From positions 682,001-746,000 of the forward strand of contig VJWM01000108.1 of NCBI GenBank assembly GCA_010909165.1: a stretch of DNA of 64,000 nucleotides. Reading direction: 5' to 3'. Position 1 is the stretch's first letter. Every line of letters starts with the position of its first letter. The translations under genes were made by a program, and so were the position numbers. The notes beneath the pieces are model-generated. The model saw only the letters and a list, made by a program, of their open reading frames with translations, searched no databases and had not been told where the DNA came from. Of the stretch, positions 2,898-37,800 are shown piece after piece. Source of the DNA: Anthoceros angustus (Eukaryota > Plantae > Anthocerotophyta).

Positions 2898-2949
2898 ATG
2901 TGTGGGAGCGGTCGTGGAAGTAGATGCGGTCGTCGAAGGGGAAGTAGGT

Positions 2950-6793: not shown

Positions 6794-8760
6794 ATGCCTC
6801 GGGTGAAGACAAGCGGCTCTGGGTCTGACTGTGGGGAAACGCCTTTGGTAAAACGACAACGCCAAGCAGCGGAAAGGTTGCAGAGGGTCACAAGGAGGGC
6901 GCAGGGGGAGGCTACACCTGCTGGACGAGGAAGAGGGACGAGGAGTCAGCCCGGAATCGGGGATCGGATCCTATCCGATTCAGATTCTCAACTCTCGGCT
7001 ACGGAAGAGGTACAAGGGCCCAGGTACCCCAACCCGACCTTGCTTTTTGATCTCCGCTCCGGATTCCCTAGACCAGCTTCAGTTCAGTCAAACTTCGTGG
7101 GTGTGGAAGTCAGTCCAGACGTGGTAGTTGTGTCAACTACCGCAGTCGCTGAAAGTACTACCACGATAGTTATGACTACTACTCCGGTAGTTTACCACTA
7201 AGCAATCCTACCCGCTGTATGGCAAAAAGAAGGGCCACGAGGATCCTGACGAGTTTGTCGAGCGTTTTGAGCAGCTGACGCTTGCCAACCAGGAGGTAGG
7301 GGACGCGCAACGTGCCCAGCTGTTCTATGGAGTCTTGTGCGGAACGGCGGCCAAGTGGTACAAACGAGAGTATTTAGCCTCGTCCACACCCCCAGCCACC
7401 TTTGAAGTCTTGAAGAGGGCTTTTTGCGAAAGGTTTAGGGGAGTTGATGTGGAGGGATATGTCTTGTCCAAACTCGAGGGATTGCGGAGAGGGAAGAAGG
7501 AGACACTGCAGCTTATGTGGAAAGGTTCCACACCGCTGTGATCGCGGCCGGACCTCACTGGAGTTAATGGCAATCCGCTGGTTCGCGAGGGTCCGGGCCC
7601 GAGATGGGGAAGCACGATGGCTCCAAGCCGAGAAAGACTTGATTGGCGATCAAGGCCGCCTCGAACCACGAGGAGTCCAATGCAGGGGAAAAAGAAATCA
7701 AGAGGGGCACATGGAGAGACAAGAAGAAATCCAAAAGAAGAAGAAGTACTACCCTCCTCCGATGATGCCCACGGAGGAAGATAGCTCCTCACAGACTCTG
7801 ATAGTTCCAGTAAGAAGAGACCGTGATAGCTCAGAAAGATTCACGAGATGAGCGTCAAGGGACAAAAGAAACGAAAAATGAGTGGGAACGCGCCAGAGGA
7901 AAGGAGCTCGTGTATGCAAAAAAAGACGCGGAGCAGGTGAGAAGAGAGGTGGAAACAGCAGCAAAAAAGGTGGAGCAACAGGGAAACAAGATGGAAGAAA
8001 TGATGGTCAAACTGGAGAAACTTCATCTCAATGCCATAAAAGAACACGAGAGGAGAAGGGCTACTACGAGGGCATGAGCGAATCTCTTCTGCTCGACTTG
8101 CGGACAGCAGGGCCACTCGAGGTCGAATCGCCTGCAAAACGAAGGTGCAATCAGGGCTAGAGGAGGAGGAGGAGATGTGCTTGGAAGATACATACCAAAT
8201 TCAAGAGGCGACACGATTTTGGCACCAAGACTTTGTACTTCGAGTTTACGAAACTCCCCAAACATGGGCATTCAATCGATGGCAAGGAACCCCGCAAATG
8301 AGTGCCATTCGGTTACAATTGTCGAGGGTTCTATCCATGAGCCTGCCCCTTCCGCATCTCGCCAGGGAATGGTGATTTTGAGAGGTTGTGTGATTGCAAG
8401 CAATCGGGACATAAGCGTGTTCTCTCGTCAGACATGAAGAAACATGTGAGGATTGCTCACCCCTGCTACAACCCACCCACCCACAAGAAAGTCCGCTGCC
8501 GATGCAAGTCAAGATGCGCTCATGGCCGTATGGGAGGATTCCCGAGGCCATCGAGGAGTTTGAGGGGAGGATGGACAAGCGGGTACTATGAAACTCGCCA
8601 TGGTCGTCAACGGAGCGAAATGAGGAAGGCAGACACCCTCAGAAGAGGAGAATGGGGGAAGAAAAGAAAGAAGGAAGGATTGGAAGCCTCCGTAACATCT
8701 GTGAGTGAGGAGGAAGTCACGTCTTCATCAGGCGAAGAAGGAAGGGAGGTTCAACCAGAG
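6794..8760 (+). pseudogene. gag: gag of Athila/Tat-like gypsy element B, frameshifted
   Basis: GHEDPDEFVERFEQLTLAN...GTAAKWY...FEVLKRAFCERF...LSKLEGLRRGKKET (7225-7510, across frames); coiled coil 7823-8077; C-x2-C-x4-H-like CDCKQSGH at about 8386. Confidence 0.75.
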
Positions 8761-10119
8761 CCAATGAGGGGCCTGAAGGCCGTCCGCAGACGGAGAGGAG
8801 CACGAACCCAGGATGGGCGTAGGTAAACGTCTGAGGCCCGCACGGGCCAGACTCATGATTTTGGCACACAAGGCTGCGGACTTCTGGTGACCCGAACCAG
8901 CGGATCCGCGGGTGGCGTGCAAAGGAGGAAGCGGAGGGAATAGAGCTGAGTCGCGGTGGTCCGCGGAAAATCCGGGCGGGGAAAAAGGATGACTTGGCAT
9001 TCCGCGATGTCAAGGGAAGTTATGGAGATGATCCGAGAGGAACTAGAACCTTGACCGTCATCATACCCACTCACAGTACCACAAAACTAGTTATTGGCCA
9101 TCCTGTTCAACGACCCGTGAGGAGGCTACCGCGGCTTCATAATAAAAGGAGGGTGCAGGAGTCAGAAGGGAGAACATGAAATAGCCCTTCCAATCGGGGA
9201 GGCCATCATGGACAAAAGTTCATGATAACATTTGGACGACTTCTCGGGGACAATCCAGCACGCCAAAAATCGGTGGGCGTTGAAGGCAGCATAACCCAAG
9301 AAGAGGCGCGCTCTTCCCAAAACAAGGCCAAGACCCCTTGCCGTGAACATGGTGGCCATGGTTGACCATGGCCTGCTGGAGTCGCATCGAAATTTCGGGT
9401 GTAATTGTGGCGACTTTGGGCCGACGGCCAGGCCAAGACAATCCCGTGTCGTTGTAGTAAGGAGTCCGCTCCCAAGAGAATGATAGGCTCCGTTTGTCGC
9501 ATTCAATCATTTCTCACCTCACACCGTGACCGTTTCAGACTCAAACACACACGTTTATCGTTTCACGACTAACTACCCGTAACGTCCACCGAACAGGCTC
9601 GGCGTGGCCAAACGTTTAAGGACTCATTCGCATCCGTATCATTCCAATCCGTCCCTCGTACTTCTAGTCCGTCCCTCTTATCACTCTCGCTACACTCATC
9701 GTTCTTTGGAAAAAGGCGGGTGGGCTGCGTGGTCCGGACCTCTTCCGTCGTTCACCGGGCCTCTCCGTCCGGGCTCTACACGCCCTCCCGGAGTTCCTCC
9801 GGCTCACGCGTTCGGTCCGCCTAACGCCGGTCGCTCACGCCGACGCAAGGGTCCCCGATCGCCTCCCCTCGCACACACCGCCACACGCTAGGGTCCGGCC
9901 ACGAACCGACTGGGCCTCCCGGAGCCGCCGTGCTCGCCGGACTGTGACTCACGTTAGCAGGAAGACGCACAAGGGTCTGCAAGAAAATGCGGTATCCACA
10001 CCAAGAGAAAGATACTTTACTAGAGCAACTCCGGCTCTCTTATACTACGCCCAAGGTCGGCGTCTTTATTACACTCCTATTCTCGAGCGGTGGCCACCTG
10101 TGCCCTAATCGGCCTACCA

Positions 10120-15689: not shown

Positions 15690-16615
15690 AAGACAATGGG
15701 TGGCAATGCATTTGGGCATACTGATAATTTGACCCTACAATGGGCCAGCCGACAATGTTGGGGCATACAATATTTGACCCTACAATGTGAAACAATGGGT
15801 GACCATACATCCATTGACAATGTTACGACCATACAATGGGTGGCCATTATGATACTTCTTCATACAATCGTAACTGTATTGACAATGCGTGGCCAATAGT
15901 TGACCATCTGATGGGCAGCCGACAATACAATGTTGGCGACAATGTTAGCTGAGCATACAATGGTATGACAATGTTACAGCCGGGGACAATCTTGCTTGAC
16001 CAATAATGGGCAGCCCTACAATGGGGCAGCCAAAAACCATCGATAGGCGTGGCCCGAGCAATGTGACATTTGGCACGGCAGTGGCCTGGCCAGTACAATG
16101 GCTGACCCGACAATATTATTTGGCGACCATACAATTAATTTGGCCCTAATAAAATCAGGTGACCCTTCTGTTGAGCATTGTTTGACCTCACAATGCGTGA
16201 CCCAAAAGATCCGAGGAATCGCCAGCCCTATGATAGGTTGGCCGGAACAATGCGTGGCCTCTGCATAATGCTGGCCCGGAAACAATGGGCTAGCGACAAT
16301 GAAATTTGGCCCTAGGACAATGGGCAGCACGACAATGCATTTGGCGAACAATGGTGACCATACAATGGCTGGCCATACAGTAACTTGACCGACAATGCAT
16401 TTGTGACGTGTTGGCAGCCTATTAGGCGGCACAATGGATAAGCCCAAAATCGGAATGGCGCCATAACGCCGTGATAGGCCCAGCCCGTGATGGTTGGCCA
16501 TCTGATGATGGGCTGGCACAGCCGCTGATCGCTGGCCAAACAATAGCTGAGCCATAAAATGGGCGGCCAAAATCCGGGAATGGCGTAACGGCAAGCGATA
16601 TGACCATATAATGGC
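15690..16615. repeat. 15-bp minisatellite (CAATGGCTGGCCATA family), degenerate copy in unit I
   Basis: Repeated ACAATGG-containing units; same motif as the cleaner arrays further right. Confidence 0.85.
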
Positions 16616-16974
16616 CGCATAAAAGCTGACGTATGTACAAACATGTGCCGCCGGGAAGTGCGCAGCTTGCTTGTGGAATTATAGAGTGGCACACCTTTCG
16701 CCCTTAATAAGAACATAGAAATGCCAAGGCGTGGCCGTACTGGTGATTAGGCGCCCACTTTCGCGACTTTTCCTTTCTAGGCCGCATTTGGCATGTGTGT
16801 GGGGCTGGGATTAATGGGTGCGTGTTGCGAAAGTGGCACGCCTCCGCTTTGTTTGAATGGACGTGTTCATCATCCCCCACCAAATTTAAAATACCCTCCC
16901 CTTCCTCCGGTCTCCCACCAGCCCCTTGCTAGTCCACCAAATTTATAACTTTGCTTACATTTTACAATGTTGCT

Positions 16975-17530
16975 TATACTTCTACGCAATCTACAACATG
17001 GAGCCACATCATCGATCCCACTGTTATAAATGAACTCTAATCATATTTTTGAAATCAATACCAATAATAAAGACTTTTGAAGAAATAAAGATCAAATATC
17101 AAATTTTGAGAAAGAGATTTTACAATGTAATCTACAACAAGAGGCACGCCATCAATCCACCGCCAAAATGGTCTTCAATAATATTTTTTGTGATTAATAA
17201 CAATAATAAGAGTTTTAAAAAATGAAGAACACATTTCGAAAAATATTTTACAACGAATCTACAACAAGGGAGCTACATCATTCGATATATATTACCTCAA
17301 ATCATATTTTTGATTAATAATAAAGAGTTTTAATGTATAAAGAATACATTTTGAGAAAAATATTTTACAATGTATTATCTACAAGGAAGCTCACATCATC
17401 AATTGCTATTGTAAATGGTATTTCCAATCATATTTTTGATTAATGATGATAAAAATATTTTTTGAAAAATAAAGACTGCAATTTGAGAAAAAGGCTTTTA
17501 CAAGCGTAATCTACAACAAAAGGGCGTAGC
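16975..17530. repeat. AT-rich block of about 5 x 125-bp subrepeats (unit I)
   Basis: TTTACAATGTAATCTACAACAAGGAGCCACATCATCAAT-like motif recurring every 120-140 bp. Confidence 0.8.
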
Positions 17531-17569
17531 CTAACGCCCGCAATGTATAGGTGCCCGACGCGATGGCTG

Positions 17570-19410
17570 GCCAGCCGGACATGAGGAGGTGTCTGCCCTG
17601 TGATAAGTCAGATTCAGCAAAATTGCTTCCTTTCCGGCACGCTCCTCATCATTTTCTTCGTTGTTCTTCTTCCCCCCCTGCAGAGACAATCTCCTCGGTC
17701 GAAGTACGTGAAAAACAGCGGTGGCCAGTCGAAGGAAAGAGGTCGGAGGTCAAAATCCTCACATGTAGTGGGAGCGGCCTCCCACTTGCGGCCAAGTCAG
17801 GGCTTTCATCAAAGGTGACAATCGCGTGCGTAGACCACCTTGATGCAGGGAGTGCGATCATAAAGCTTGTAAGCTTTTATACCTTCGTTGTATCCTATCA
17901 TAAGAATTTCTTGGCCTTAATGAGCAAATAACTTGGTCCTCTTGGCCTTAGGAATGAAAGCTGTAGCTATACTGTAGAAACCGGGGTTCGAAGATGAAGG
18001 ATAAATTTGGTTTTTCCGCCAAAGAAAGCTTCATAAGGGTGCATCTCCTAAAATTCGCCGGTGGTGGGCAATCGCCATTGCATAAATAAAGTCACAGTGA
18101 GGGCCTCCATGATGACCTCAATTGATGTGAGGTGGCAAAGCGGTGAGGCTGGCAGTGGAACAAGGAAGAAACCATCTCTCTGCGGTGTTAGCAATTCAAG
18201 CGCTCGATTTACACCATTTGCTGTGGTGTGTATCATCATTGTAAGTTGTCGTCCTATCCTCATCTCTGCGCATAATAGGCTTCGGAAGTCGTTTGATGTA
18301 GAAATTCACCACCATTGTCGAGAGCGGAGGGTTTTCAGTTTATTTTTCAAGTCCATCTCTCTTGTATACTTCGCTTGTAGTCTTTAGGGAGAAGCATTCA
18401 CTTTTGGCTTCGAATATAAGCGCCATGACAATCCCGATCTTGCTTATAAATACACCTATGAATGTTAGGAACATACATCGCCACCACCAATTGAGGGTAG
18501 TGAAAGTGGCTCACATATGTCGATTAATAGACGAGCTCAAGAACGCCCTCGAAGCCTTTGTGGAGGAGCTTGGTTCTTAGAAGGTCGCTTGATGACGCGT
18601 TCGACAAGATACGTAAGGCTTCACAAAAGTATTAAGGGTGGCAAACGCCAATTTTTCCATCTACATACATGTCACTGGGCTATGTTTGCTAGTTACATGT
18701 AATCGTGGAGGGTGACCTAAACTTGCATGCCATAAGCCTGGGGCTTTTCTATCCTGCTGCGGTAACTGCAGTTGTCTCTACAAGACTTAGAAGGTAAGTG
18801 TGTTCCCGGCATCAACTTCTTTGTGTGTGTGCAAGCGGAATAGATCATGGTGCTCATGGAACCATAAGCTGTCACTTTTTCCATGATCAAATGCATCCAC
18901 GATCCCTACATTCCTCGCAATATTGAGCGAGGATACAATCGCCGTTATCCATGTTGAGCTTCCTAACTTGAGGAGATGAGTTCCTAGTCATTTCTGTGTG
19001 ACATGATACACATCATGAGTAAAGTGTGATCCTCCACAGGAACCGGCAATGATTTTCCTTGCCTATTCCTCGGAGACATAAGTGATCTATATCGTCACCA
19101 GTCAAACGAAGGCGATCTTTGCATTTGGTCTATATGTAATGACGCACGCGCTTCTATCTGAAACTCAGAACACAATGTATTTATTCTTTTTGTATCAAAA
19201 TTGACCACTCATGTAATCGGTCTCCCTTGTGTGTGTTTGTTAGCCAGGACATGTGGGGTTAACAGCAGGATGAGCAAACTCCTAGTCCCTACCAGGCGTC
19301 ATTTGGAGGGAAGCTTGCTTTTCACTCATGGCGCAGTGTCTCTCAAAAGTGGAGTTGCCCTCCTTGCGAGGTACCCGGGGTACTTCTTCGACACTTGCTT
19401 TCAGTAACAA
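17570..19410 (-). pseudogene. Copia protease, GAG-pre-integrase and integrase of unit I (left of the DNA transposon)
   Basis: Homologous to the same region in the other units; DNGGEF-like integrase motif near 18310. Confidence 0.8.
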
Positions 19411-19442
19411 CACTGTAATATTTGGGCGGTACAAGATATACA
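19411..19442 (+). repeat. Left terminal inverted repeat CACTGTAATATTTGGGCGGTACAAGATATACA
   Basis: Aligns with the reverse complement of 28833-28864 (CACTCATAATATTTGAAGCGGCCGAATATACA); TSD not resolvable. Confidence 0.7.
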
Positions 19443-19949
19443 TGGCGGCTTTCAGGTTAGATACTCAGCAAACGGGGTTTTTGATGGGTGCTCCGGCCAG
19501 GCCATATTTGAACATGCTTTAGAGAAGATGGCCGCAGAATAAGGACGTATTGGCGCCTACAGCCACATGTATATTGACACACATACATGCAAGGGAAGGT
19601 AAAATCAAGTAGCATTGTTTTACTAAACTTTGATACTATGTCTGGAACCATGATCTAGAATTAGGGTCAGATTTAATGACCCCATGAACGCGACCCCTAC
19701 GGCCTGGAGATATGCACACATATGTACCTACTCTCTTGCTATACACCCATATATGCACATGGTGGGCGAGGTTTTGAACAACGATAGGCGTTAAAAGGAC
19801 GGCGGAAGACACGATCCAAGCCCGGCCCGGCGCTTCCCGCTTGAGAAGGGACTTGTCCGGGCGTGTAGGCGTAGCGTTGAATGACTTTCTCGATCTGTGG
19901 GACTCACTTCTTCAAAGCAGTTTAAGCATAGCGGCCTTGAGGACTAGTC

Positions 19950-22900
19950 ATTTGCGGCGGGCACACGATCATGGGCGAACCTACAAAATGAACAAAGTTG
20001 CTTCCTCCAGTGGTACATGGACAAGGCACCTTGCAAACCGTTGGAACAAGGCACATATTCCGATCATTCCTCGCTGACTCGAGTCCCTCCCGCGGATATA
20101 TGTCGCTGATTCATCTCCATTACACCATCGGGGTTGCAGCTTGAGGTGGGCTCGTAGAGCACTCATCTTCTCTTTGATCGCTTTCTTGTCGGCGTCTGGA
20201 TGTTTCCTTGCGTTGACTTGAACCCATAATAAGCGACCAGTTTTCCGAGCGAATAACCACGTATATTAGGTGGATTGTGTTGTTTGCCTCTTCCTTTTCG
20301 GGTGACGCCTTGATGTTCTCAACTCGAGGATGACTTCGCCATATACTTCCCTTCGTAATAAATGCGTCTGTGCATCCTCCACCAATGCACAAGTAAGTAA
20401 GGATCGAGGTGCGGTGAAATGGACTTCCACAACCTTTGCGAGCAGCTACATTGTGTATGTCACCCTCACAAGGCGTTATAATGAACATGCCTTTCTCTAT
20501 CTCCATGATATCCCCATTCATCCTTTCACACTCTTGTCCTTGACGATCGCACCGGTGGGGTCCTAAGTACATGTCCCTTTGGGGAATCTCCATAACAATG
20601 CTTCATCTAGAACAACAACCCCGCCACGGAGGTGGGCGGTGAATTGCGTCAGTTGCTGCACTTACCACTTCCATGGTTTTTCCAAAGACAAGACCAATAT
20701 TGTTGTCTCGATACATGCAATCTCCTCCATCCTTCCGAACATTGTCCACCATTGTTCTTCTTCGTCATTGACATATGTTGGTAGATTTAGCATTCCTTTC
20801 CAAGTAAGCAACCCCCCGAATAGCGATCATCCGCAACACCACCTCTTTTGTCCTTGGCTTGGCGCCATCAAAGGTGCCGGGCTAATATCGCTCGAACAAA
20901 CGTGAACTCCAAGCCATCTTCCGACTCCCGAGGAGAGGTTGAATCTCGGATAATCTGTTACTTTCCCCGATTATTCTCCTCTCGTGTGATTTTGAACCGA
21001 TGTTGAAACGATAGATTGTTCAATTGTTTCACCGCCTTGTCGATATCTCGCGCCTTTGTTATAGGCCGGACATCAAAATCCGGAACCTCGGTCAACACCT
21101 GCACCTCCGGGTTGGGCGTATACGCTGTGCTTATCAAGGTCTCCATAGCTGGTAGGGTTTTCACCTCCTTGTGCTTCAGATGTTTAGAGAAGCAAGAGAA
21201 CATCTGGTCCACTTGGTCGTGTGTATGCCCTACGAGGAGAAATCCGACCTTCACCTTTTCAAAGGTGCCCACCTCCACAAGCATATTGAGGTGCATAAAA
21301 GCAACGGTTCTTATTCTCCGGCATGTGTTATCCAAATGCAAATATAGAATTTTCGAAGGAACCCATTATACGTGTGGATAACGTCACGAATAATAGCAAT
21401 AGTCAAGTTTGCATCATTCTCAGTTCGCAAAGTGAGATACGCCCGGCTTTCAAAGTATAATTGTGTACCATGCAGCCCACCACGTGGAGCTATGCGGCGA
21501 TCCTCCTTCCTTGTCCTTCTATCTCAAAATATGCAACTCGTCTTCTTGATCCATCCGTCAATGCATAGTAATATGTATTTCGAGGGACAAGTAGCTTTTA
21601 GTGCGATGCTTCATCAACTTCTTCCTCTCGCTCATCAACGTGTTCGATGTTTATTTAAAGCGCCCCGATATACATCCGCTAAACACAAGATCGAACCGCT
21701 TAGAAAGGACAAGTTAGTTCCCACCTGGGTTAGCCCATTCAAAAATACAAACATTTTATTCCCCAACATGCCGGAAACATATCGAGGCACCGCGTGCCAA
21801 TGCCATTCCACGGCATAGGCGAGCGAGGAAGGCTCGCGCCCAACCATCCGGTGTGCAACTATGCCGAGAGGACTCTTGACCGCCTAACCTCCGGGAGGGC
21901 GCCGCATGCCGTCGCCCTAGCCACGGCCGGCTGGCCTCGCTCCATCGCCCAATGCCGGTGACCGGTGGGTAGGCGCCGGCATGCCGCCCCGCGCTTTCGG
22001 CCGCCCCTGCGCGCCCTCCCATCATGCGCGGAATGCCCGGTGACCGGTGGTGCCCGCATCGCGCCCGGCCCGGCCGCGGCATGCCGGCGCCTCCCTCGGT
22101 GCGCTTCCCGCACGGATGGGGCGCCGGCATGCCGGCGCCCATCCGATGCGAGAGGCCGCGCGAGGCGGCATGCCAGCGCCGCAGCGCCGACATCTGCAGC
22201 GCCAGGGCGCGGGCGGCACTCCGCCGCTCTCCCGGTACGCCGCGGACTGTGGCATGCGCCCGCATGCGGCGCTGCCCTCTCCGGCCAAACCGGCCGTGTC
22301 TCATCAGAGCGCTGCGTCTGCGCGTCCAAACACCATCGTGCCCCTTCATTCCATGGCTCCAACATGGCTGCCGCCCGTGGAAGCTAGGGCGGGCATTCCG
22401 GCCTTTGCATCTACACGGCACTAGTTAGAGGGTTAGCTCTCCGGAAAGAGTATGATACCTATTACAAGATTCTATGCGAGAAATGACGGAGAACCGTATC
22501 GGCATACCTTGATCAATCCGATGACCCGATACTCGGATGTTGTACTTCAACCCCGCATAACGCACATGTCGAAACCGGTTGGACTTGAATTTTCACCCTC
22601 TTAAAATTTTCGTCCATAGCCTCGTGAAATATGCATATGACACAAACCGCAGCCTTGTTCCATGTCGTATGATCGATTCCAAACCTCAAGTTTAGTGAAT
22701 GTAAGGTTGTACACTTCAACCTTTCAATGAGAAGAAATGTTGAGTCCATCCACGCGATCGCGCAAGAGCATGTGAGGATTGCACACGAGGATTGCTTGGC
22801 CCCATCCCAAGGTGCGTTCGGAATACCACTTCTTCAACTCGTCGTATCTTGCAGCCTATGCAACTCGACGAAATGCTTTCAGCAACAAAGATCGGGGCTC

Positions 22901-23960
22901 TCCCATAATGTAGGTGACAACCTTGTCTCGCATTTGGCATTCACATCCGTCTAACAAGAGATTGAAGGAATAACTCCGCCTCCACTAGCCTCAAGAACCT
23001 TGTCCTCTGCTCTCAAGACCATCCCTTGACAAAATAGGAAGACACAACTTTTGCGGATGGCTTCCGCCGTCGCCATCACCGCTGCTGGGTTTCCGTAAAG
23101 AGACACCGGCTCGCCTCTTTGAATCGGCAAAACATTCGTCTCACGCATTGTCCGACTCATCGCCGGTGATAAGAGACACCATTTCGTTTCCTCGAGGTGT
23201 ATCGGCACATCAACAACGGAATGAACTTACCACACGGTGGTGATTCAACAAAGACATCCGATCCCCTTGGGAGGCTGGATTTGTGACGACCGCCTTTCTC
23301 CCTCCGACGGGCCACCCACCACACACCTATTCAAGTTCCGGGAGTAGGTGGCAAATACCGCGTATTCCTACATTGTGCGGCGCTGTGTTCTCCTAGCCAA
23401 AAGGAAGACCATCGGTTTCATCCCATGGAACAAAACGCTTAAGCACCATTTCTACGCGTTTGTGACACCTTGCTATTCAAGTCAAACAACACAAAATTGA
23501 ACCACACATAGATCCGCCATTGTGACATTTGGTCTTCAAAGGCATGGAGTGGGTATCAAAGAAAATGACCTTCTAGTAGGGATTGTGCGGGCTTGAGTTA
23601 GGAGGCAAGCGATGGTGCACCATGAGTTCCTTCGCCGTCCCTTCCAAGACCTTCTTCTTCTGCATGAATGAGAAGGACCTTGTTGCACCCACGGACTCCA
23701 TGAACAAGGACCTCCTGCGAGGCGTTAGAACAAACAGGACGTGCAATGACTTTCCACATTCGTAGCGTAAATGATCACCAGGTCGACTTCAGAGAATACC
23801 TCATCCTCGTCCAAGCCATGGATAGAATGCAGCATCTTGGCAGGCTGCCCGACTTAGACGATCGGCAACAGCGGGCAACGAACATCAAGCTTGGAACATA
23901 CCGGATGGGTCTGCAACCACCCGAAAACTCCCCTCTTATTGCCGCCGTCCAACACAGCTG
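19950..23960 (-). CDS. Cut-and-paste transposase (DUF7869-like DDD core, possibly Sola-related), spliced, frameshifted in this consensus
   Basis: KY...CIDG(M)DQ.KT at about 21545-21580; HLDNTC(R)ENKN at about 21310-21341; FEKVKVGFLLVGHTHDQVDQMFS at 21195-21260; canonical donor AAG|GTATGC at 22508/22507. N-terminal boundary approximate. Confidence 0.8.
21897..22275. repeat. Cluster of GC-rich palindromes (GGCGCCGGCATGCCGGCGCC family) inside the predicted transposase intron
   Basis: At least 6 degenerate copies; perfect 22-bp palindrome GGGCGCCGGCATGCCGGCGCCC at 22119-22140, extendable to CGGATGGG...CCCATCCG. Confidence 0.85.
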
Positions 23961-24289
23961 ATGCGCTATTCAATTAAGAGGGCATAAGACATGCCACCCA
24001 TCGACTCCACCCACGCGCCATTGCATCGATGGTTCGGTGGCGGCGAGATATCCAGTGAAAATAGATTGCATTTATTGTGATATAAGGTTCGTAATGATCG
24101 AGATAGTGTCATACGGTATAAATAAGACAGGTATTGGGGTTTAAATATTGGCGATGGTCTATATTTTGACACGTCACATTAGGGTTTCTTACGGATGTCC
24201 GCTTCTAAAAGGGTATAACCGAGAGGCCCACATACGCTTTCTTGCGGTGAAGGTGAAGTAGGCTCACGAGCGGTGCGCGGCGTAATCCA

Positions 24290-27200
24290 CAGGAAGCACA
24301 CCATCGCCGCACCTTGGGCGCCAATTAATCCCATCTGGTCGGCGATTGGCGCGGGCCCGCGATCGAGGGCTAGAGGCGCCTCAGCGACGCCGTCGAAGGT
24401 ATTGTGGCAATCGCTACTTTTTGCTCCAACTCACGGCCACGGTGTGTGCGTTGCGATTACGGGCGGTGCGAGATTATGGTGGGCGGCGTAGCAAGAAAGA
24501 CTGCCGGCAGCCGACAACCCCGGGATTGTGGTGAAGGCGAAGAAGGCGCTCGGCCGGAGATGCGTTGCGAATCTCCATTGCGGTGAGCGTTTTCAGGGCA
24601 TGTTGGTGTCAAGAATCCATCTTTTCCCGTGCTTTTTAACTCCTGCAGGTGTTCGAAGGCTGGGTCTCTGAATTCAACAAAGACAGCACCAAAGCGCATG
24701 GAGGAGCAGAGGAGAAGAGTGGAATGTCTCGAGCAAAGAAGAGCACCCAGCCCAATCCATCGCCATACACGTATGAGGAGACAGTGCTACTACGGAGACA
24801 CACAAGCCAGGTTGAGGAAACAGCGGCATTGGACAAAGAATGGTTTCTAACCCAGGCAAGTGAGCCACAGGAAGATGGGGCAATATGGACACCCTTGTTG
24901 AAGTTGTGGGTTACAGGCTACCTGGGGGCGCTGCCCAATCAGCGCTCAAGAGCCGGATGGGTATTGTGGGCAAGTTTGGAGAGGACACATTGCATCCGGA
25001 GGTGCAAGTGCTCTGCACATCAAGACCCTATGGCGTTGATAATTTGCCGCACAGATGATTACAAGGTGTTCCTCTTCGGATAGATGGCTTTCAAGCAAGA
25101 AATGTGAACCAAAGGAGCAATGCAATTTCGAGAAAGCCTACGCTGAAACCAGTCGGTGGCCACTTAGGCCTTCAAATTCACTTCACCTTCCTCCCCATCC
25201 CGATATCCGACATTTCAACACTATGGTTTGCAGCCAGGAAGACTGTTCTACAGATGCCTCTGTGGGGTCATCACAGTCTGTGATTAATCACAGGAGGGAG
25301 ATGTCTTTCCGAAGAACAAGACAGGCACTGCCTGAGTTCGCAATTGAGGACCAGTACCCTCCTCATGTTGATTTGAGCCAGAGCTGGGCCCTTCCGACGA
25401 GGAAGATGGCCCTATACCAGATGTACTCGGACAGTCGGATGCGGACGGGTCCGAAGGGGAAGATGCACAGAAGGAGGCGGATATCATCATGGACTTTGCG
25501 CCGAACCTCCTCAGCCTGCACTATGCCGCGGAGGCCGAGGAGGAGGGAGGCGCGGCATCGGGCGCCCTCCATGCCATGCGTGTGGGCACCCCCAAGTGTC
25601 TTGGTTTTGCCCGGCCGGACAAGCGGTCGAAGGCGCCGGCATGCGGCGCCTGATGCCTTCCATGGGAAAGCGGCGGCGACATATGGAGACGCGGTCTGGG
25701 AGCCAACCAAGGGGGAGTGGGAGCGACATGCAGCGGCCGGGAGGAAGGGGCAGGTGGCATGCACCGTGCCGGCAGCAGTGCGGGCGCGGATGGGCGCCGG
25801 CATGCCGGCCCATCCAGTATTGTTGCGGTGGTGCCCGAGTATCCTCGGATGTTACAGGCGGAAAGCACCTACCGCAGATGTGATCGAGGCGAAGGGGAAC
25901 CAAGCGCATACCATGGGGAGGAAGAAAGGCACAATGATGGGCAAGCCATCCGCCATCCAAGATATTCCTACACTTCATGTGTCGATGAAGAAAGGTTGAG
26001 GCGTGTTGGATGAGGATTATTTGAAGGTTGAGAAGCCGCATATGGGAAGAAAGTGGTTCAAACCGCTTAAGTTGGAATACTTGAGACACCTTCTTTCGAC
26101 TCATGATGCCCGGATCCGAAAAGTGGACGAGGCTTGGACGAACTACCTAGCAGGGGTGATTTCAAAGGGAGAATCGAGGAAGGAGTCTTGCCTCTGCATG
26201 ATTGATCCGGCAATGATATCAAGTCATTGGATTGGCGAAGTTCGGCTAAAAATATGTGATGGGAGTGCTTGGAGGAAACCATACATATGCATGCACACCT
26301 TGCGGACATATCACAGGAAGGCAAGCCTCCGGTGGATTGAGGCTCATGTGTATTGTGGTGACTATTCCGAATGAGAGTCTTAGCCCACAACACCATGTCC
26401 GACAAGAGGCGGAAGATGAATTTTATTGAGCGGTGAGGTATTTGAGAGAGCTGCAAATCGCGAGGGATGGTGTCAACATGACCATGAACGGAAATTCAAC
26501 TTGTACAAGGTGCTTGGTGATCGGCGACGAAGGCCGCGAGAGCGATGCTAGCAGAACAAGGTAGACAACAGGACCCACATTCTATGCATCTCGGTTGGAA
26601 GGCAAAGTGTGGGAATGTGGACAAGATATTCAAAAGTGGGAGTCCATGGAGTTGCTTAACAGAAACATGTTGCAGCAGCAAGAAGAGCAAGGGCAAACGT
26701 AAAGTCACGATGACCAAGGCGGGGGATGGCGCATTGTTGAAGCCTAAAGAGATGCAAGGCAAGCCTTGGAGGAGTTTTCAAGGCATCCCACAGGAAAGTG
26801 GGCAACAAATGTTGATAAGTGCAGAGAAGGTTTGTGAGCTTCGGACCTCAATGGGATGGCGAGGAAATCACCACGAGGAAGAAGTTTCATGTGATTCAGG
26901 TGGCGATGGCCAAGCACTTGGGGTGTGACTCATTCGACCAAGTCTGGCAAGAATATCCTCAACACTCTACGGACGAGGTCATCGCAAGATTTCAGACGGC
27001 GTTTGAGGGAAAGGTAGGTGTCTTTATCCTCCATTATTAGCAGAGAGGCGCGGCATGCGCCACTCTCGCTTTCCTTGAGAGGGGCCTTTGGGCGGCCGGC
27101 ATGCGCGCCCGTCCCATTCGAAGCAGTCGAAGGGCGCCGGCCGGCGCCGGCATGCCGGCGCTCCCGCGCCGTTGCCGAATGGAGCGGCGGGCCGCGCGCC

Positions 27201-28721
27201 CGGTCAGCGATTCTCAAGTCGTGATAGACTTGGAGGACTCATGGGGCATGCGGCGCCCATCCTTCCCTCCCATTCGAGAAGGTCTCTAGAATGAATGGCC
27301 AGGCGCGGCATGCGCCCGCATCATTGCTTCCAAGATATGCCTTTGTCCTGTGAATGTCCTTCCATTGAATGTCCGTTATATTGACATAATCTTTTGTCGT
27401 TTCTGCAAGTAAAGGATGTGGATGACTAAGAAACTACTGATGCTTTTCAAGCTTTTGTGCTTGAAGTGCACACTTGGAAAGGCTTGGAGGATGGCAGAGG
27501 GCTATGGCGGACATGGACATGGAAGAAGGCCCAATCTTTCACGCATTCGACAACAGAGAATATTGTGAAGTACCGAGTTATGGCAAGGGATATCGTTGAC
27601 ATGAGGGGCTTCTGGATTCGAAATACACATTGATGGTCATGGATGTGCCCGAGGATTTAACAAGGGAAAACATGATGTCACTATGGCTGCGGTTGGTACG
27701 GTTTTCCATGCTTTCCATGATATGACAAGTTGCGATGAGATACGGATGATAGTCATGCGGTGTGGAGGAGCACCACACGGTGAGGGAGGCAATGCGAAGT
27801 GGTGCATCGGGAGGGTTGGTGTCATTTGTATGGGACAAGACTAATATGCGAGCGACCTAGGGGCTACGACCATGGAATACATTACAGATTGGGTGGGGCT
27901 TAACGCCAGTGGTGGCCAAAATTTCCATGCTCCCCAATAATGTCCAGGTTCCTTCAACAACGGACGCGGTCATTGGGCATGACATCGCCGTGAAGAAGTC
28001 GCTATACACATCCCTCGATAATTTGGTGGTAATGTATCGAGAGGCCATTGGGCACGATGATGAGAATCATCAAAAACTTCTCGAAGGAGGGAGATTGGAT
28101 TTTAGGCGCGTGTGCGAAGTGGATCGACAACGATGGTCGCTCTCCCTATGCGGTCGGAATTGCATTCGTGGATGTGGACAAAGCGCGCAGAGTTCATACA
28201 TCGGAGGATCCATGGATATGAAGTTTTGCGACGCCGATGAGGAGTTGACCCACGAGCCTCACCGCCGGGTCCAACAACTCTGGGCTAAAGAAGTGACATT
28301 GTCGGAAAAGGTTTGTCACAAGCTCAAGTTGTTTCTTTGGGGTCTTCCAGGCGCCGCAGAGATCCTTGACGCGTTGGGCAGCAAACATTGGACACGTGTG
28401 GCCTCCAATGACAAGCCATCGGGTTGTGGAGGTGGCTCCTCGGACCAGAAATATCATGGAGAGAACGACAACTTTGAAGACCAGATCATGCGCGTCAAGA
28501 CCGTAGAAGTAGTCATGGATAGCGTGTCACGGCGGTGCCAGAGTCCCAATTGTTTTGTGATCCGTGCGGTAGGTAGATTTCTTGTTTCATGGGTTGAAAG
28601 TTTTATGTGTAACGATTTGGAGCAGCGCATGTGGCCTCTTCACCTTCAAAAGCCTTTAACGACTTACGTCCAAAACGCCTATTTCAAGGCAACCACCATA
28701 ACTAGGCGTGTCTCGAACTAA
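24290..28721 (+). CDS. Putative ParB-like domain + beta-class (circularly permuted) N6A/N4C DNA methyltransferase, multi-exon, frameshifted in this consensus
   Basis: RIRKVDEAW (26110-26140), KYVMGVLGGNHTYA (26250-26291), YTLMVMDVP-x-GFNKGKHD (27624-27676), FVWDKTN (27825-27845), ERPLGTMMRIIKNFSKEGDWILGACA-(G)-SGSTTMVAL..GRNCI..DVD (28039-28179). Predicted introns 24583-24648 and 27014-27409. Gene ends approximate. Confidence 0.7.
25544..25815. repeat. Second cluster of the same GC palindrome
   Basis: GAAGGCGCCGGCATGCGGCGCC (about 25630-25651) and GGATGGGCGCCGGCATGCCGGCCCATCC (about 25788-25815). Confidence 0.8.
27046..27322. repeat. Third cluster of the GC palindrome inside predicted intron 27014-27409
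   Basis: GGCGCGGCATGCGCC, GGCGCCGGCATGCCGGCGC (about 27143), GGGCATGCGGCGCCC, GGCGCGGCATGCGCCC. Confidence 0.8.
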
Positions 28722-28832
28722 TGCGGTGCATTGAGATGACATAACACCATCCCTTAGAATCAAATCATGCTTAATCATGCATTATAGGTCTTGTCAAGAT
28801 TTGAACATGAGGGTTTGATTTTGGAAGAGGTT

Positions 28833-28864
28833 TGTATATTCGGCCGCTTCAAATATTATGAGTG
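28833..28864 (-). repeat. Right terminal inverted repeat
   Basis: Reverse complement is CACTCATAATATTTGAAGCGGCCGAATATACA, similar to the left end. Confidence 0.7.
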
Positions 28865-29670
28865 TTTGACCTCAGAACTGGCACCAAGCACGGTGCTGGA
28901 TTTTCCGCCTTCTTGGGTTTCTTACGTGAAGTAGCTCGCTGTGAGCTGCTAGCACTTGAGGTATTCATTTACCTCACGGAAGTTAGGCTTCTTTGCCTTT
29001 GCTCGCTTTGTGGTGTAAAAGAGCTGCTGAAGATGCCTCGTTAGTTCCTCTTGTTGCTTCTTCGGAGAAGAGCTCCCACTAACTCACAGCGTTGTTTGTG
29101 GAAGAGTAACTGCACCTTTAGCTAGTTTCGTACAAGTCAAGGCATTGTAGGGCGTCACAAAGTGTGACCATGACTGGGAGTGACATCATGAAGTACAATG
29201 TGAGTAAATCATCCTTGAGAGGTCCGAAGCGCTCTCTAACTTAGAAACCAGTGTTCTAAAGAGTCCAAGATGTTTTTCAATTGTATCTCCATCTCTCATT
29301 TTGCGATTCGAACATTGCAAGTCGCGAGTCGACTGTGTATTTGTGCTGCGTCTGATCTTGAAGCCTAGACCATATCTCAGCTGAAGTCTTGCATCCAGAG
29401 GTTTGTCTTAGCATGTCGGAGGTCAACCCACTCCGGATCAGGTACATGGCGCTTCATCCCTAATATATTGTCCATGCATCCACGATTCTTCTTTTCTAGA
29501 AGGAAGGAGTGAGTCATAGTACAATGGCGAAACTTGTCCTCCCTTTGGCCGGCTTCCATAGCGCTTGTTTTGTAGTGCTCCTGCATCCGCAACCTAGATA
29601 TCATAATCTGCTCCCCAAATGTCCTTTTCCTTGAAGCCATCTCCACCAAGGTTAGTGTTTGGCTCACCAT
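28865..29670 (-). pseudogene. gag: Copia gag of unit I (right of the DNA transposon)
   Basis: MVSQTLTLVEMASRK...; KMRDGDTIEKHLGLFRTLVSKLE (copia gag UBN2-like). Confidence 0.8.
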
Positions 29671-30828
29671 GTTTAGGATTTTGTAGGTCCTTCCTACGTT
29701 AGGAATTTTATGGTCGTTAGACTAATGCTCTGTCGACCTAACTTGTGCGGTCAACAGGGCTAATGGTTCAAGGGTATCTAAGATGCTATTGATGCATCAA
29801 AGATAGGCTAAATCGCCGTTTTACAAAGGGTTAGCATGTCCAGTACATGTAGGTTGATGTGCTGCATTTGAACTCTGTTTGCAATCCTTTGTTTTCTAAT
29901 CTCCCACATTAAATGCATAGGTGGAGCAAGAGGGACATGAATTTGGAGCATCAAATGTTTTTATTTGTTTTATTTGCACGCTTATATGCAACACCCCTGG
30001 AGGCTGGGTTAGCAAGTAAAGCGGGCTTTAACAATGTAAGCAACTTGAAGTCCAAATGTCCTATCTGCTCTTTCAGATCTTGTAAGTCTACACTGACAGC
30101 AGCACGTTTCTGACTGATGTTTTGAAAACGTCTATCAACATGTTGCTGGTGTGCTTCAATTCTGGCATTTAACTGTGATACACTTGTGTGTGGTGCGACA
30201 TGTGTGGTTAGGAAACCCGATTACACTATCGAATGCTCAACACGCACTCTGAAGATTGTTAGGGTTTCTAGGTGGAGGGGCAAACACCAGATGGCGCTGT
30301 TCAGGGAAGAGAGTATCAATCAATGTGTTGAATGACTGGCTTACTTCAAGAGCAAGTGCGGGCTGATTTTGCGTCAACTATCCATTCTGTGTTGGTGGGA
30401 GTGTTTGCAATGCTCTTGCTCCTTGCCCTCCGCGCGATTCACGTGGAATGCGCTCGGGCGTGGCTGCCATTGTTGCCCGTCCAATAGATTGGCCATTCAT
30501 TTGGCTAGGATTTGTGTTTTAGAATTTTCGAGAACCATTTTTGTAATTCTATATGATTTTATATAAAGATTTTGCCAATTGGTTGTTCTAGTATTTTAGT
30601 GTCAAATTGCTTCACGCAATCGACAGTACTAGGATGCACTCTAGAAATGCAAATTTTCTAAATAAAAATCAAGAAAAGAAACTACAAGTTGGTTTCTTGA
30701 TCATTTTCTTGTTTTCTCATTAGAAAATTATTTTCTAAACAAGAAACAAACACAAACACATATTTGTGCACATCTAGATGTGCCCAATTTAATGTGCATT
30801 CTCATGAATGCAATCTATGCCCTGCATG

Positions 30829-31629: not shown

Positions 31630-32185
31630 CAATGTTGCTTATACTAACGCAATCTACAACATGGGAGCCACATCATCGATCCTTATAAATGAACTCTAAT
31701 CATATTTTTGAAATCAATACCAATAATAAAGACTTTTGAAGAAATAAAGATCAAATATCAAATTTTGAGAAAGATTTTACAATGTAATCTACAACAAGGA
31801 GACGTCATCAATCCACCGCTGCAAATGGTCTTCAATAATATTTTTGTGATTAATAACAATAATAAAGAGTTTAAAAAATGAAGAACACATTTCGAGAAAA
31901 ATATTTTACAACGTAATCTACAACAAGGAGCCACATCATCAATCGCTGATATATATTACCTCAAATCATATTTTTGATTAATAATAAAAAGAGTTTTAAG
32001 AATAAAGAATACATTTTGAGAAAAATATTTTACAATGTAATCTATAACAAGGAAGCCACATCATCAATTGCTATTGTAAATGGCTTCAATCATATTTTTT
32101 GATTAATGATGATAAAATATTTTTGAAGAAATAAAGATCAAAATTTGAGAAAAAGGCTTTACAACGTAATCATACAACAAGGGCG
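31630..32185. repeat. AT-rich 5 x about 125-bp subrepeats, unit II
   Basis: ATCTACAACAAGG cores at about 31650, 31790, 31917, 32040, 32170. Confidence 0.85.
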
Positions 32186-34803: not shown

Positions 34804-37800
34804 TGTTGAAATAACCTCTTTAGCTTATATTTGTAATCTAGGCGTATGCATTAGGGTTTGACTATATAAACATTAGTTCATGTAATATCACTTGTACATT
34901 ATTATTTTCTCTTGGCTTTCCTTGCCTTGTGTGTGCTACCGCTCATGTCAAGCTTCCTCGGCATAAATCCAGCGTGCATTTTGGTTATGGTATCGAGCCA
35001 TCACGCTGGTGATTATGTTGTAACTAAGATGCCGAGGCAGATCGAACTCGACCCGGAGGCGGAGGAGGTTTTGTTAAATCCTTTTCGGACCTCTAGATAG
35101 ATGTTCATTCCTCGAGCATCCCGTGGATTGAGGTGAGTTAAAAGGTGGCGTGATCGAGGGTTATGGAAAATTACATGCGGAGCCGCGATAATTCTTATTT
35201 TCAACGTCACGATTTTCTACTCGTGGTACAACTTGTGGACGCTTTTGAGACCAGCGCTCCTCGGCCGGGCCACCCTCTAAGCGGCTATTCTCACTTTCTG
35301 CACGGAGACGCCGATGTATCTAGCAACAAAGCGCCGATTCCGGTCATTAATCTTGAATTCACTTTGAATCGCTATTTGACGAGAATCTTTCTCAAAGCAA
35401 ATGGACTCATCAGATATGAAAATTCACAAGTTTGCCGTTAAATTCTCATCTGAACTTGATAGATTGACTAGGCAACTGCAGATTTTGAACAACACTTCGC
35501 TCCTCTTATGAGGAGCGCTCGATTGATCTAACCTTTGTTTCTGGTTTTGTCTAGGGTTTTTGTTGATCGGGATAGGTTCTAATGGATGTGTCATCGTTTC
35601 TCTTGTATCCCCCCACCATGAAGCTTGCAAGCGACACAGGTTGGTAACGTTCCTCCAAACCTTCCTTGCCCTGGACAGAAGTCAAGTCGGTGAGGTTAAT
35701 TTAGCTTTTCTGTGAACGAACCCTAAAAAAGTGTTTTCTTCAGAACGTTTCACTGGGACCTTTGCTCTCCATATGTCTACTAGAGACCATCTGCTGTTCT
35801 TTCCCCTCCCTACATTTCACATAGTCGTGGCCTAGGTACCAGTCCTTACCTCCCAATCCTCTACAACTTATCGTCATGGCTTGCTCAAATCATTTACCGA
35901 TGTTAAAGATAAGGACAGTTCAATGGAACCAAATTTCGGTTGGCGTGTTCATGCAAAGTACCTTAAAAGCACGGGAGTGTGCCGGCCAGATGGCTCCTAC
36001 CCGAACCTCCTCCCATTTGGTTCCATCCAGCAGCGAGCAACTATTGTCCTCAAGTTGATGTTGATAAGTGGAATGGTCTGAACAGTATTGCGTTGCCATT
36101 CTTATTTATGGACTTGATGAGGTCACGATTACGGATGTGGAATCTCTTACAAAAGCACATCGATCTGGACTCAACTCAACTGGTACATATGCCGTTAAAA
36201 CAATGCTTTCAAAGTGCAGCAATCCATGAGTTCTATACTTTGAGGATGCGGGAGGGTGATAGTGTGGCTGCCACACAAGCAAGTTTCGTCACCTTCGCTC
36301 CCGCCTTCTTTGAGTTGAACTCGGCGATGTCGGATGAGGATGCCAGCAATCGCTCACCCTACACCGCATCATACCAAACATTCGTGTACTCCGAATGGAC
36401 CTCTTGCTATAGTCGAGAATTTAGGTAGCAACCGGCTGCCCTTACCTTGAGAGTGTGATTGCTGCCCTTTATCGGGAGGAGCAGCCGACTTGACATACCT
36501 CGGGTGGCTCTAGCGTAATCCGACGATCGTGTTTTATATACCTCACAGTGGGGAGGTAGAGGAGGAAGGTCCTCTTTCCAACGTCCACAACAAACCTCCA
36601 ATGCTGCTGGATCATCTACTTCTAAGAAGCTGGCGGTTATGGCGTGTCAAACACCGACACTGGAAAGTGTCGCCGTAAGAAGGCGGGCGAGCCTCGTCGA
36701 CCCAAGCCAGAGGTCAACTCTATTGCTAAGGAGCGATCTTCGTCGGAAGGAGGCAAAGCTGTGGTGAAGATATACACCATCTGCCTTTCCTCTTCACCAA
36801 GTGCTCCCGGAAATTGGTACCTCTCACCGCACACATATTTGCAAGGATAAGAGCTTGTTCAGCAGCTTACAAGGACATCCATGATTCGAGCAAGTTGTCT
36901 TGCTAGGCTAATCTACTGTCGAGGTTATGGTACATGCCGTTTTGTGATGACTGACAACTCAGTCTTGCATGTCCCAGGTATCTTGTACGTTCCAGGCATG
37001 GCGAAAAATCTGCTCTCTGTGAGACTCCGAGCCATGCAACATAATTTGGAGTTCAGATTCTTTGGTTCTACTTGCGAAGTATTCAGATGTGCTTCGAGCA
37101 CTGAGTGCATTGGTCGAGGAGTTCCAGATTTTGAACTGTATCGGTTGGATGTTCTCTGCGAAGTTCCTACTTCGACCCCCGTGGCTGCATCGACCATCGC
37201 CGTCACACTTGCCTGCAACTGTACAAGCCAAGTTGTGGCATGCTCGACTCGGCCATGTCAACAAAAATACATTAATAAAATGACCACGCTATCTTTGAAC
37301 CACTTCCTTCTTGTTTCAAGGATTTACCAATCTGTGAGGCATGCTTGCAAAACAACGGAGAAGCCGTTTCCCATGCTGGTTTTCGACATCTTACATTCTC
37401 GATTTAATTCATGCGATATCTATGGCAGTTGCAGAAGTCCATTGGCGGATCATCCTATTATCGACCATTACGGATGATTTTAGTCGCTACACATGGACTT
37501 ACTCAATGACAAAGAAGAGTGATAATCGTTCACTGTTTTCAAGTGGTTGCCTATGGCGCAGGCGATCAGCCATTTCCTCAAGTGCATCCGTTCGATAATG
37601 GGAGACGCAACAACCAATTTGATCAAGATCTCCAAGAGCATGGCATCATTCGACAACTCACGTTCCTTACATACCGTGAGAATGGTGTTGCGGCGCAAGA
37701 ATCGAGACCCTTATGGGCATGACGAAGTATGCTGGGCGCTTTACTGCTGAATCTTTGAGGGCTTTGTGACTTCAACGTACATTCTGAATCGGCTGATAAC

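Follow-up and report, generated by a model that had tools for sequence, protein, structure and literature searches.

The window analyzed here is a 64,000-nucleotide stretch of the Anthoceros angustus genome (contig VJWM01000108.1, positions 682,001 to 746,000), and all coordinates given below are positions within it. Between positions 19409 and 28866 lies what is, in all probability, an old and inactivated copy of a two-gene cut-and-paste transposon of land plants. Judged by sequence similarity, the minus strand carries a transposase gene of the DUF7869 type (gene 1); gene 2 runs divergently on the plus strand and combines an N-domain with a circularly permuted beta-class amino-methyltransferase. 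The original prediction, made from the DNA letters without database searches, had described a DNA transposon carrying such a methyltransferase, hidden by frameshifts; what it had found is the wreck of gene 2.

A two-gene element interrupts a macrosatellite unit

Self-comparison of the window revealed copies of a 5-6 kb macrosatellite at 16540-19402 and 28900-64000. One unit is interrupted by the segment 19403-28899, while the same point is continuous in other units (33803/33833), and the two parts of the broken unit, 16604-19402 and 28900-29834, join without a gap in those other units. Relative to the paralogous repeat units, the element at 19409-28866 is a 9,458-bp insertion. It is bounded by inverted repeats, AACACTGTAATATTTGG... 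and AACACTCATAATATTTG..., each some 34 bp long. The left terminal inverted repeat (TIR; 19409-19442, plus strand) starts with AACACTG and pairs with the reverse complement of the right TIR (28833-28866, minus strand), which starts with AACACTC. The two arms are mismatched at 7 of 34 positions; they align with a score of 24, compared with 13.8 +/- 2.1 in 1000 shuffles, and both begin precisely at the insertion boundaries. The probable copies of a target-site duplication adjoin them, with TAAC on the left (19405-19408, where the flank ends ..AGTAAC) and TGAC on the right (28867-28870, where the flank starts TGACC). The empty site in the paralogous units reads CCCAATGACCTGG, with a single TGAC where the flanks of the element read TAAC and TGAC. 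We provisionally take the duplication to be 4 bp long, as seen in one old copy with one mismatch; none of the relatives has both ends on one contig.

A related family, represented by loci L024 and L027, possesses a perfect 35-bp TIR that also begins with 5'-AACAC. In five independent copies of the L024 family, similarity ends directly after ...CGTGTT and the flanks are unrelated. This divergence of five L024/L027-family copies at the end of the TIR confirmed both the mobility of the elements and the terminus call. The shared 5'-AACAC stands at 19409 and 28866 in the window element, within 117-151 in L027 and within about 8596-8630 in L024; the remainder of the TIR is unrelated, and the terminus is shared despite proteins that are just 30-45% identical. 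The TIR sequence of the window element itself was searched for in the relatives and was not found. Membership in the CACTA (En-Spm, or CMC) superfamily, hinted at by a 'CACTG' near the end, was considered and dropped because the terminus was fixed at AACAC, the termini being AACAC(T/G). The duplication is, furthermore, apparently 4 bp rather than 3 bp, the transposase matches DUF7869 alone, and Transposase_21 was not found in the element pieces that were scanned.

Gene 1 is represented by a transposase relic in fragments at 20459-21673 on the minus strand, of the DUF7869 type and putatively a DDE/D enzyme. The DUF7869 profile (PF25273) matches 20961-21365 with an E value of 5.7e-31. In tblastn searches, the relic matches the intact 829-916-aa transposases of L024 and L027 (E of about 3e-30), as well as the protein P0006 of the liverwort Riccia sorocarpa. 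An exhaustive search with the 20961-21365 piece placed its closest named relatives in R. sorocarpa, at about 48% identity. The relic retains LDNT and GHTHDQVDQMF, both invariant in the transposase family alignment. Across the family, the conserved motifs are DGMDQ, LDNT and GHTHDQ.DQ, and there are invariant candidates for a D/D/D-E triad. The DUF7869 transposase is presumably an RNase-H-fold DDE/D enzyme. Together with the 9,458-bp insertion and its TIRs, the DUF7869 relic bears out the cut-and-paste nature of the host element. Intact transposase open reading frames (ORFs) in relatives are 534-546 aa long in L006-L008 and 829-916 aa long in L024 and L027. The transposase of L006-L008 is divided over two ORFs, a 443-539-aa protein and the DUF7869 protein of 534-546 aa. 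In L024, L027 and the Riccia gene model, these parts are united in a single protein of 813-916 aa. A literature search for DUF7869 retrieved no paper.

A broken beta-class methyltransferase follows on the plus strand

The methyltransferase relic occupies 27609-28185 on the plus strand. Its peptides lie where the original prediction had placed them, and they are spread over three frames: YTLMVMDVP at 27624-27650 (frame 0), GFNKGKHD at 27653-27676 (frame 2), FVWDKTN at 27825-27845, ERPLGT...GACA at 28039-28116, SGSTTMVAL at 28118-28144, LCGRNCI at 28146-28166 and FVDVDK at 28168-28185. The three frame changes after ACA do cancel out, each being +1 and their sum zero modulo 3, and the Tyr codon of motif IV has indeed been cut down to 'GA' by the loss of one base. 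In terms of motifs, the window reads D-V-P-(broken codon)-G-F for motif IV (27642-27658), W-D-K-T-N (27831-27845), (Q->E)RP...GDW (28039-28101) and a motif I remnant, A-C-A/S-G-S-T-T, that is split by a frameshift into GACA and SGSTT (28108-28132). The order is the permuted one, with D-V-P at 27642, W-D-K at 27831, (E)RP at 28039 and S-G-S-T-T at 28118, and is the same in all intact relatives.

Homology was assessed with a frameshift-aware profile search, as had been suggested with the original prediction. The profile was built from 11 intact proteins and the Riccia sequence, and its 201-position core was aligned to the window DNA by a dynamic programme in which frameshifts were penalized and controls were equally free to hop frames. 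The alignment reached 156.5 half-bits over 27609-28163. Dinucleotide shuffles scored 39.1 +/- 5.0 (maximum, 57; 300 shuffles), and 206 other 1.2-kb blocks of the window, taken on both strands, scored 37.3 +/- 5.3 (maximum, 56.7), giving a Gumbel P value of about 3e-13. The alignment path passes through six frameshifts (27650, 27754, 27774, 28042, 28118 and 28146) and one stop (27858), and the relic agrees with the family consensus at 60 of 180 positions (33%). The methyltransferase homology had thus been rightly recognized.

Neither the single in-frame pieces nor the N-terminal half read across the breaks had a Pfam match. The C-terminal 63 residues, with X at three breaks, matched PF01555 (E = 1.2e-4, 22.5 bits, profile positions 166-210 of 221, where a match was to be expected); this falls short of the gathering score, 26.7, and the free choice of frames inflates even this value. 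When the same 63-residue piece was compared with phage genomes by tblastn, the matches were weak and lay nearly all on annotated DNA methylases; a phmmer search of Protein Data Bank (PDB) sequences with it was swamped by designed-repeat-protein artefacts and was set aside. A stop-free frame of 286 aa (27861-28718) runs through and past the broken methyltransferase, which is surprising amid so many frameshifts. It had no homologues among candidates of 157-500 aa, and we treat it as a chance frame or a lineage-specific tail.

The N-domain, the linker and the decay of gene 2

Upstream of the methyltransferase, at 26099-27031 on the plus strand, lie the remains of the N-domain and linker exon belonging to the same gene, recognized by the N-domain profile and by a match to a Riccia exon. 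The N-domain, about 300 residues long in the family, aligned to 26099-26853 with a score of 209, compared with 38 +/- 5 in shuffles, across six frameshifts and one stop. Residues 297-354 of the Riccia exon match 26858-27031 (E = 6e-4), which corresponds to the linker exon. With relics of the N-domain, linker and methyltransferase all found, the whole two-part gene is therefore present and collinear, and thoroughly broken. A weak match to the chromodomain profile Chromo_MIT1 at 26819-27037 (E = 0.005) is probably a false call, the stretch being the family linker exon (..QLGC.SWEQV.EEYP..S..). The N-domain matched DUF6551 in three of eight members, weakly (best E, 0.012), and single sequences had no Pfam match. 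A ParB/Srx-like domain was considered for it; the motif V.GG.H...A bears just a passing likeness to ParB, and the N-domain had no PDB or phage match.

Overall, the methyltransferase gene in the window contains 12 frameshifts and 2 stops. The window copy is dead and encodes no protein. The original prediction had suggested polishing the locus. Given the number of frameshifts and stops and the fragmentary transposase, the decay is real rather than an assembly error, and no restoration is to be expected from polishing.

Both genes recur together in relatives

Relatives of both genes were collected. In Riccia sorocarpa (L001), the gene models are intact, and the DUF7869 gene, which encodes 813 aa, runs divergently from a gene for a 689-aa protein that carries PF01555. 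The Riccia exons containing ...EYTLAIADIPYGF... and ...IYQKPQRLISALISHLSHEYDWLLDLCAGSGTT... match the window readings YTLMVMDVP-GF and ERPLGTMMRIIKNFSKEGDWILGACA-SGSTT, respectively. Riccia carries several diverged copies on different chromosomes. Searches for TIRs around Riccia L001 found none, and comparison of the Riccia copies did not yield the element ends because these copies are too diverged. At L004, both genes are present as relics. L005, on an ENA contig, has the same two genes, its methyltransferase reading D-I-L-Y at motif IV and containing an in-frame stop; with this methyltransferase ORF as query, intact 340-366-aa proteins with PF01555 were retrieved. Intact methyltransferase genes adjoin DUF7869 genes of 534-546 aa at L006-L008, and in L010 the contig stops within the transposase, leaving a fragment of it alongside the methyltransferase gene. 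The gene pair is convergent in L005-L009 and divergent, as in the window, in L024 and L027. A metagenome scan added 20 further loci at 31-75% identity, L024 and L027 among them, and the pair is found in at least four lineages, Riccia and at least three more on metagenome contigs.

Part of the family contains introns, after the W of W.K and within G-T-G|T-T of the loop that binds S-adenosylmethionine (SAM). The intron after the Trp of W.K.N is common to Riccia L001 and L012-L028, a plant lineage from metagenomes, and is absent from the L005-L011 lineage and from the window. On the L015 contig, an intronless gene for an 844-aa pentatricopeptide repeat (PPR) protein lies at 6691-9222, about 1.7 kb past the transposon end, and serves as a land-plant marker for these contigs. 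Taken together, the Riccia relatives, the introns and the PPR neighbour fit hosts among bryophyte-grade land plants. The plant-type host that had been proposed from the sequence is supported by these observations, the closest named relatives being those of the liverwort R. sorocarpa. Scans with exact peptide patterns gave one weak match in prokaryotic genomes and none in viral contigs; because exact patterns were used, these scans say little about distant relatives.

By sequence and predicted fold, the family protein belongs to the permuted beta class

Intact relatives match PF01555 above its gathering score of 26.7, with 30.9 bits for protein P0160 and 31.6 bits for the Riccia exon. Invariant across the lineages are A-D-I-P-Y-G-F, W..VI.HS, W.K.N, VNPYQKP, the GDW..DL block and the G.G(S/T)T loop. 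Within the family the order is D-I-P-Y-G-F, then NPYQKP...GDW..DL.(S/C)G(T/S)G(T/S)T, with DLCCGTGST, DLFSGTGTT and DLCAGSGTT as variants of motif I. A profile search of PDB sequences retrieved M.RsrI, TTHA0409, bdelloid N4CMT and CcrM. A first AlphaFold model, made from a shallow alignment of eight close sequences, was unusable (mean predicted local distance difference test score [pLDDT], 39). The model of P0160 from a 24-row alignment reached a pLDDT of 72 and a predicted template modeling score of 0.68, with most of the core at 80-98. In a Foldseek comparison with the PDB, the top 38 matches were all stand-alone beta-class DNA amino-methyltransferases, in the order CcrM (E = 1.4e-13), M.BceJIV, MboIIA, PvuII, HpyAVI, RsrI and N4CMT, followed by Type III Mod subunits and METTL3. 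In line with the original prediction, the motif order, the PF01555 matches of intact relatives and these fold matches place the family, by homology, among the permuted beta-class amino-methyltransferases.

Motif IV fits that prediction in part. Its position before the SAM-binding motif is as described, and the family reads D-I-P-Y, not DPPY or SPPY. Compared with the definition (D/N/S)-P-P-(Y/F/W), Ile replaces the first Pro, and Asp, the second Pro and Tyr are retained. In known families, an Asp-initial motif IV goes with adenine-N6 rather than cytosine-N4 enzymes, although this is not decisive; as motif IV of the family starts with Asp and not Ser, adenine N6 would be the more probable target.

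To judge from substitution rates, the methyltransferase gene is under strong purifying selection in intact relatives, with a ratio of nonsynonymous to synonymous substitution rates (dN/dS) of 0.066 between L010 and L011. Other pairs are mostly saturated in dS, with dN of 0.14-0.23. Because intact relatives keep the gene under strong selection, the methyltransferase is best regarded as a regular cargo of the transposon.

Lineage-specific palindromes occupy the non-coding parts of the element

Each lineage carries its own palindrome of 16-24 bp, in 6-13 copies, in the non-coding parts of the element. In the window, the GC-rich palindrome GGCGCCGGCATGCCGGCGCC forms three element-specific clusters: A at 21895-22400, B at 25540-25815 and C, between the N-domain and the methyltransferase, at 27040-27320. 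All six matches to the GGCGCCGGCATGCCGGCGCC 18-mer in 64 kb (up to 3 mismatches) are inside the element, with 0.01 expected. Riccia has 13 copies of TGTATGCGCGCATACA, the L005/L010 lineage has GCGAGACCGGTCTCGC (8 copies counted in L005), and L024 has nine copies of AACTCGATACG.CGTATCGAGTT (region 3656-4103). One cluster is located between the exons of the N-domain and those of the methyltransferase in three cases (the window, Riccia and the L005/L010 lineage), and the promoter region common to both genes is filled with clusters in Riccia and L024. The palindrome regions of Riccia L001 are 4564-4702, 6360-6525 and 8376-8948. The palindrome sequence is wholly different between lineages, and its placement is alike (introns, promoter regions, and between or downstream of genes). 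The palindromes are plausible candidates for binding or target sites of an element-encoded dimeric protein.

Interpretation and alternative explanations

Taken as a whole, the explanation set out above, a decayed two-gene DNA transposon from a family whose second gene specifies a beta-class amino-methyltransferase, is in our judgment very likely the right one. In the living family, the element would make its own SAM-dependent DNA methyltransferase, presumably active and more probably directed at adenine N6. The enzyme, alone or via its N-domain, may act on the lineage-specific palindromes in promoter, intron and subterminal DNA. The element would thereby mark itself, timing its transposition or expression or resisting host silencing. 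There is a bacterial precedent for such timing, as Dam methylation times the transposition of IS10 and Tn5. We offer self-marking as a tentative mechanism, the likeliest one for the living family and yet less probable than not. It is doubtful whether an active amino-methyltransferase would write N6-methyladenine (6mA), or N4-methylcytosine (4mC), on the palindromes of the element and so control transposition or counter host silencing by 5-methylcytosine (5mC).

Several points weigh against this interpretation. At motif IV, Ile stands in place of the Pro of the family definition, and L005 has D-I-L-Y together with an in-frame stop. Enzymatic activity is unreadable from the window copy because that copy is non-functional. 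The fusion of N-domain and methyltransferase in one protein is suggested by a single gene model, that of Riccia, and profile and sequence searches found no Pfam, PDB or phage relative of the N-domain. Likewise, the transposase profile had no PDB relative. The target duplication, as read here, comes from one decayed copy. Finally, the palindromes could be bound by the transposase or could be unrelated hairpin repeats.

The main alternative to an active methyltransferase is that the family protein is catalytically dead and serves as a DNA-binding accessory factor, like TnpA of En/Spm, that recognizes the palindromes. We consider this unlikely. The departure of motif IV from (D/N/S)PP(Y/F/W), to D-I-P-Y in the family and D-I-L-Y in L005, is in its favor, as is a Pfam match that covers the C-terminal half of the domain only, and lineage-specific palindromes suit a binding protein. 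The methyltransferase domains of DIRS1 have, moreover, been judged likely inactive by Iyer et al. (PMC4738411). However, lineages that diverged deeply share A-D-I-P-Y-G-F and the G-x-G-(S/T)-T loop without change, and dN/dS is about 0.07. In the Erm and KsgA families, adenine-N6 methyltransferases that are active use N-I-P-Y or N-L-P-Y. It is very improbable that the methyltransferase is a host or domesticated gene that happens to lie beside transposons rather than their cargo. The failure to find TIRs around Riccia L001 and a gene order that is divergent or convergent, depending on the lineage, would be compatible with a host gene. Against this, the window holds both genes within one TIR-bounded insertion; in the L024 family the DNA downstream of the methyltransferase gene continues to the right TIR, where five copies diverge; the pair recurs in at least four lineages, with multiple, often decayed copies per genome; and the palindromes are common to the regions around both genes.

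That the window copy is intact, its frameshifts being errors of sequencing or assembly, is scarcely credible. Three +1 shifts within 50 nt after ACA that sum to zero, and the open 286-aa ORF (27861-28718), might be read as signs of such errors. Yet 12 frameshifts and 2 stops interrupt the gene, identity to the consensus is no higher than 33%, and the Tyr codon of motif IV is short of one base; the transposase is in fragments, 7 of 34 positions are mismatched between the TIR arms, and the open ORF has no homologues. We attach negligible probability to the notion that the motifs were assembled by chance through free choice of frames and never belonged to a methyltransferase. The failure of in-frame pieces and of the N-terminal read-through to match Pfam, and a C-terminal read-through below the gathering score, would fit a chance assembly; they are set against a profile score of 156.5, where the maximum in 506 equally free controls was 57, a collinear upstream N-domain, a transposase partner, and weak phage tblastn matches of the 63-residue piece that lie almost solely on annotated DNA methylases. 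Just as little credit is due to a methyltransferase domain from a DIRS-type or other retrotransposon, or to bacterial or phage contamination. It is known that DIRS elements and, since 2026, also long terminal repeat (LTR) retrotransposons may carry amino-methyltransferases, and gag/protease sequence of an LTR retrotransposon occurs elsewhere in the window. However, none of the retrotransposon functions (reverse transcriptase, RNase H, and tyrosine recombinase or integrase) turned up in the element pieces scanned with Pfam; the content of the element is explained by its TIRs, its transposase and its methyltransferase gene; and the retrotransposon enzymes are, as the papers describe them, Dam-like or PCIF1-like and not permuted beta-class. 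Contamination is opposed by relatives with spliceosomal introns and plant neighbours, and by pattern scans that gave one weak prokaryotic match and no viral one.

Other features of the window

The whole window is rich in repeats. The macrosatellite units, which are 74-88% identical to each other, occupy most of it and contain subrepeats of about 135-141 bp (for example, at 16988-17519 and 31651-32182). At 2176-5944 there are tandem duplications with units of about 0.9 kb, 84-94% identity and positive GC skew. The segment 10001-14000 is GC-rich (0.61-0.63), with negative GC and AT skew, and contains several ORFs of 170-190 aa without a Pfam match. Remnants of LTR retrotransposons include a zinc knuckle and aspartyl protease at 1485-2114 and a Pol beta-barrel domain at 36881-37477. 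An Rfam search of the window gave no match.

Significance and comparison with known systems

The value of the window copy is that of a pointer to its family, the copy itself being an ordinary dead relic without function. Mobile elements with their own DNA-modifying enzyme are a current topic, the prior examples being C5-methyltransferases and, in retrotransposons, Dam-like enzymes. The locus points to a transposon of bryophyte-grade plants that has kept a beta-class gene through deep divergence under strong purifying selection. DUF7869, an uncharacterized Pfam family, gains a biological context, that of a transposase whose ends are defined. With an active enzyme, the family would open a way to study DNA methylation other than 5mC in land plants, and it would be a naturally occurring example of a transposon that writes an epigenetic mark of its own. 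An active enzyme would also make the family a candidate source of liverwort host amino-methyltransferases, and host enzymes such as the DN4MT1 of liverworts may have been drawn from this family. We found no paper that describes a family pairing a DUF7869 transposon with a beta-class methyltransferase.

The bacterial and phage Type II beta-class enzymes (CcrM, M.RsrI, M.MboIIA, M.PvuII and M1.HpyAVI) have the same permuted order and the same QKP...GD.V.D...G.G(S/T)T block, and the predicted fold of the family resembles theirs (Foldseek E values down to 1.4e-13). The family differs from them in reading D-I-P-Y, not DPPY or SPPY, at motif IV, and in sequence, with 12-21% identity to the beta-class structures in the fold search and 20-38% to phage genes in local matches. 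In contrast to the bacterial genes, those of the family reside in a eukaryotic transposon, contain introns in some lineages and have no partner restriction enzyme. The family protein additionally has the N-domain, with no detectable relatives, in front of the methyltransferase and an acidic tail behind it. In its overall plan the element recalls En/Spm (CACTA), which encodes TnpD and TnpA, TnpA binding subterminal repeats. Each encodes a transposase and one further protein, and in each a short motif is repeated many times over the non-coding parts. They differ in that the window element has AACAC termini and probably a 4-bp duplication, and its second protein is a methyltransferase homologue.

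Among eukaryotic proteins, N4CMT of bdelloid rotifers (PMC8885841) and MpDN4MT1a/b of Marchantia (bioRxiv 10.1101/2021.02.12.428880) are likewise nuclear PF01555 proteins of the beta class with prokaryotic ancestry. N4CMT structures are among the fold matches of the family, and MpDN4MT1 is likewise from a liverwort. Both are single-locus host genes with S-P-P-Y that write 4mC, N4CMT also having a chromodomain (PMC8885841; bioRxiv 10.1101/2021.02.12.428880), whereas the family described here is multicopy transposon cargo with D-I-P-Y. The DIRS1 methyltransferase (PMC4738411) and the DAM-LTR and DAM-DIRS elements (bioRxiv 10.64898/2026.05.21.726589) also combine a mobile element with a prokaryote-like amino-methyltransferase, and the logic proposed for such retrotransposons is that the element manipulates its own epigenetic state (PMC4738411; bioRxiv 10.64898/2026.05.21.726589). 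Those elements, however, are reverse transcribing and their enzymes are Dam-like or PCIF1-like by description, whereas the present element has TIRs and a DDE-type transposase. The 2026 preprint reports Dam-like enzymes in DIRS and LTR retrotransposons and mentions DNA transposons once, in an introductory list of transposon classes (bioRxiv 10.64898/2026.05.21.726589). A 2016 survey of eukaryotic adenine methyltransferases recognized three permuted clades, none of them in plant transposons (PMC4738411). DNA transposons with an extra methyltransferase gene have been described as Mariner elements of giant algal viruses (Bao and Jurka 2013, PMC3627910). In contrast to the element in the window, these reside in viral genomes, carry C5 or Methyltransf_26 enzymes with an endonuclease, an arrangement resembling restriction-modification, and use Tc1/mariner transposases (PMC3627910). 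On the evidence of its sequence, the family would extend the known transposon-borne DNA methyltransferases by a DDE-type DNA transposon with a beta-class N6/N4 gene.

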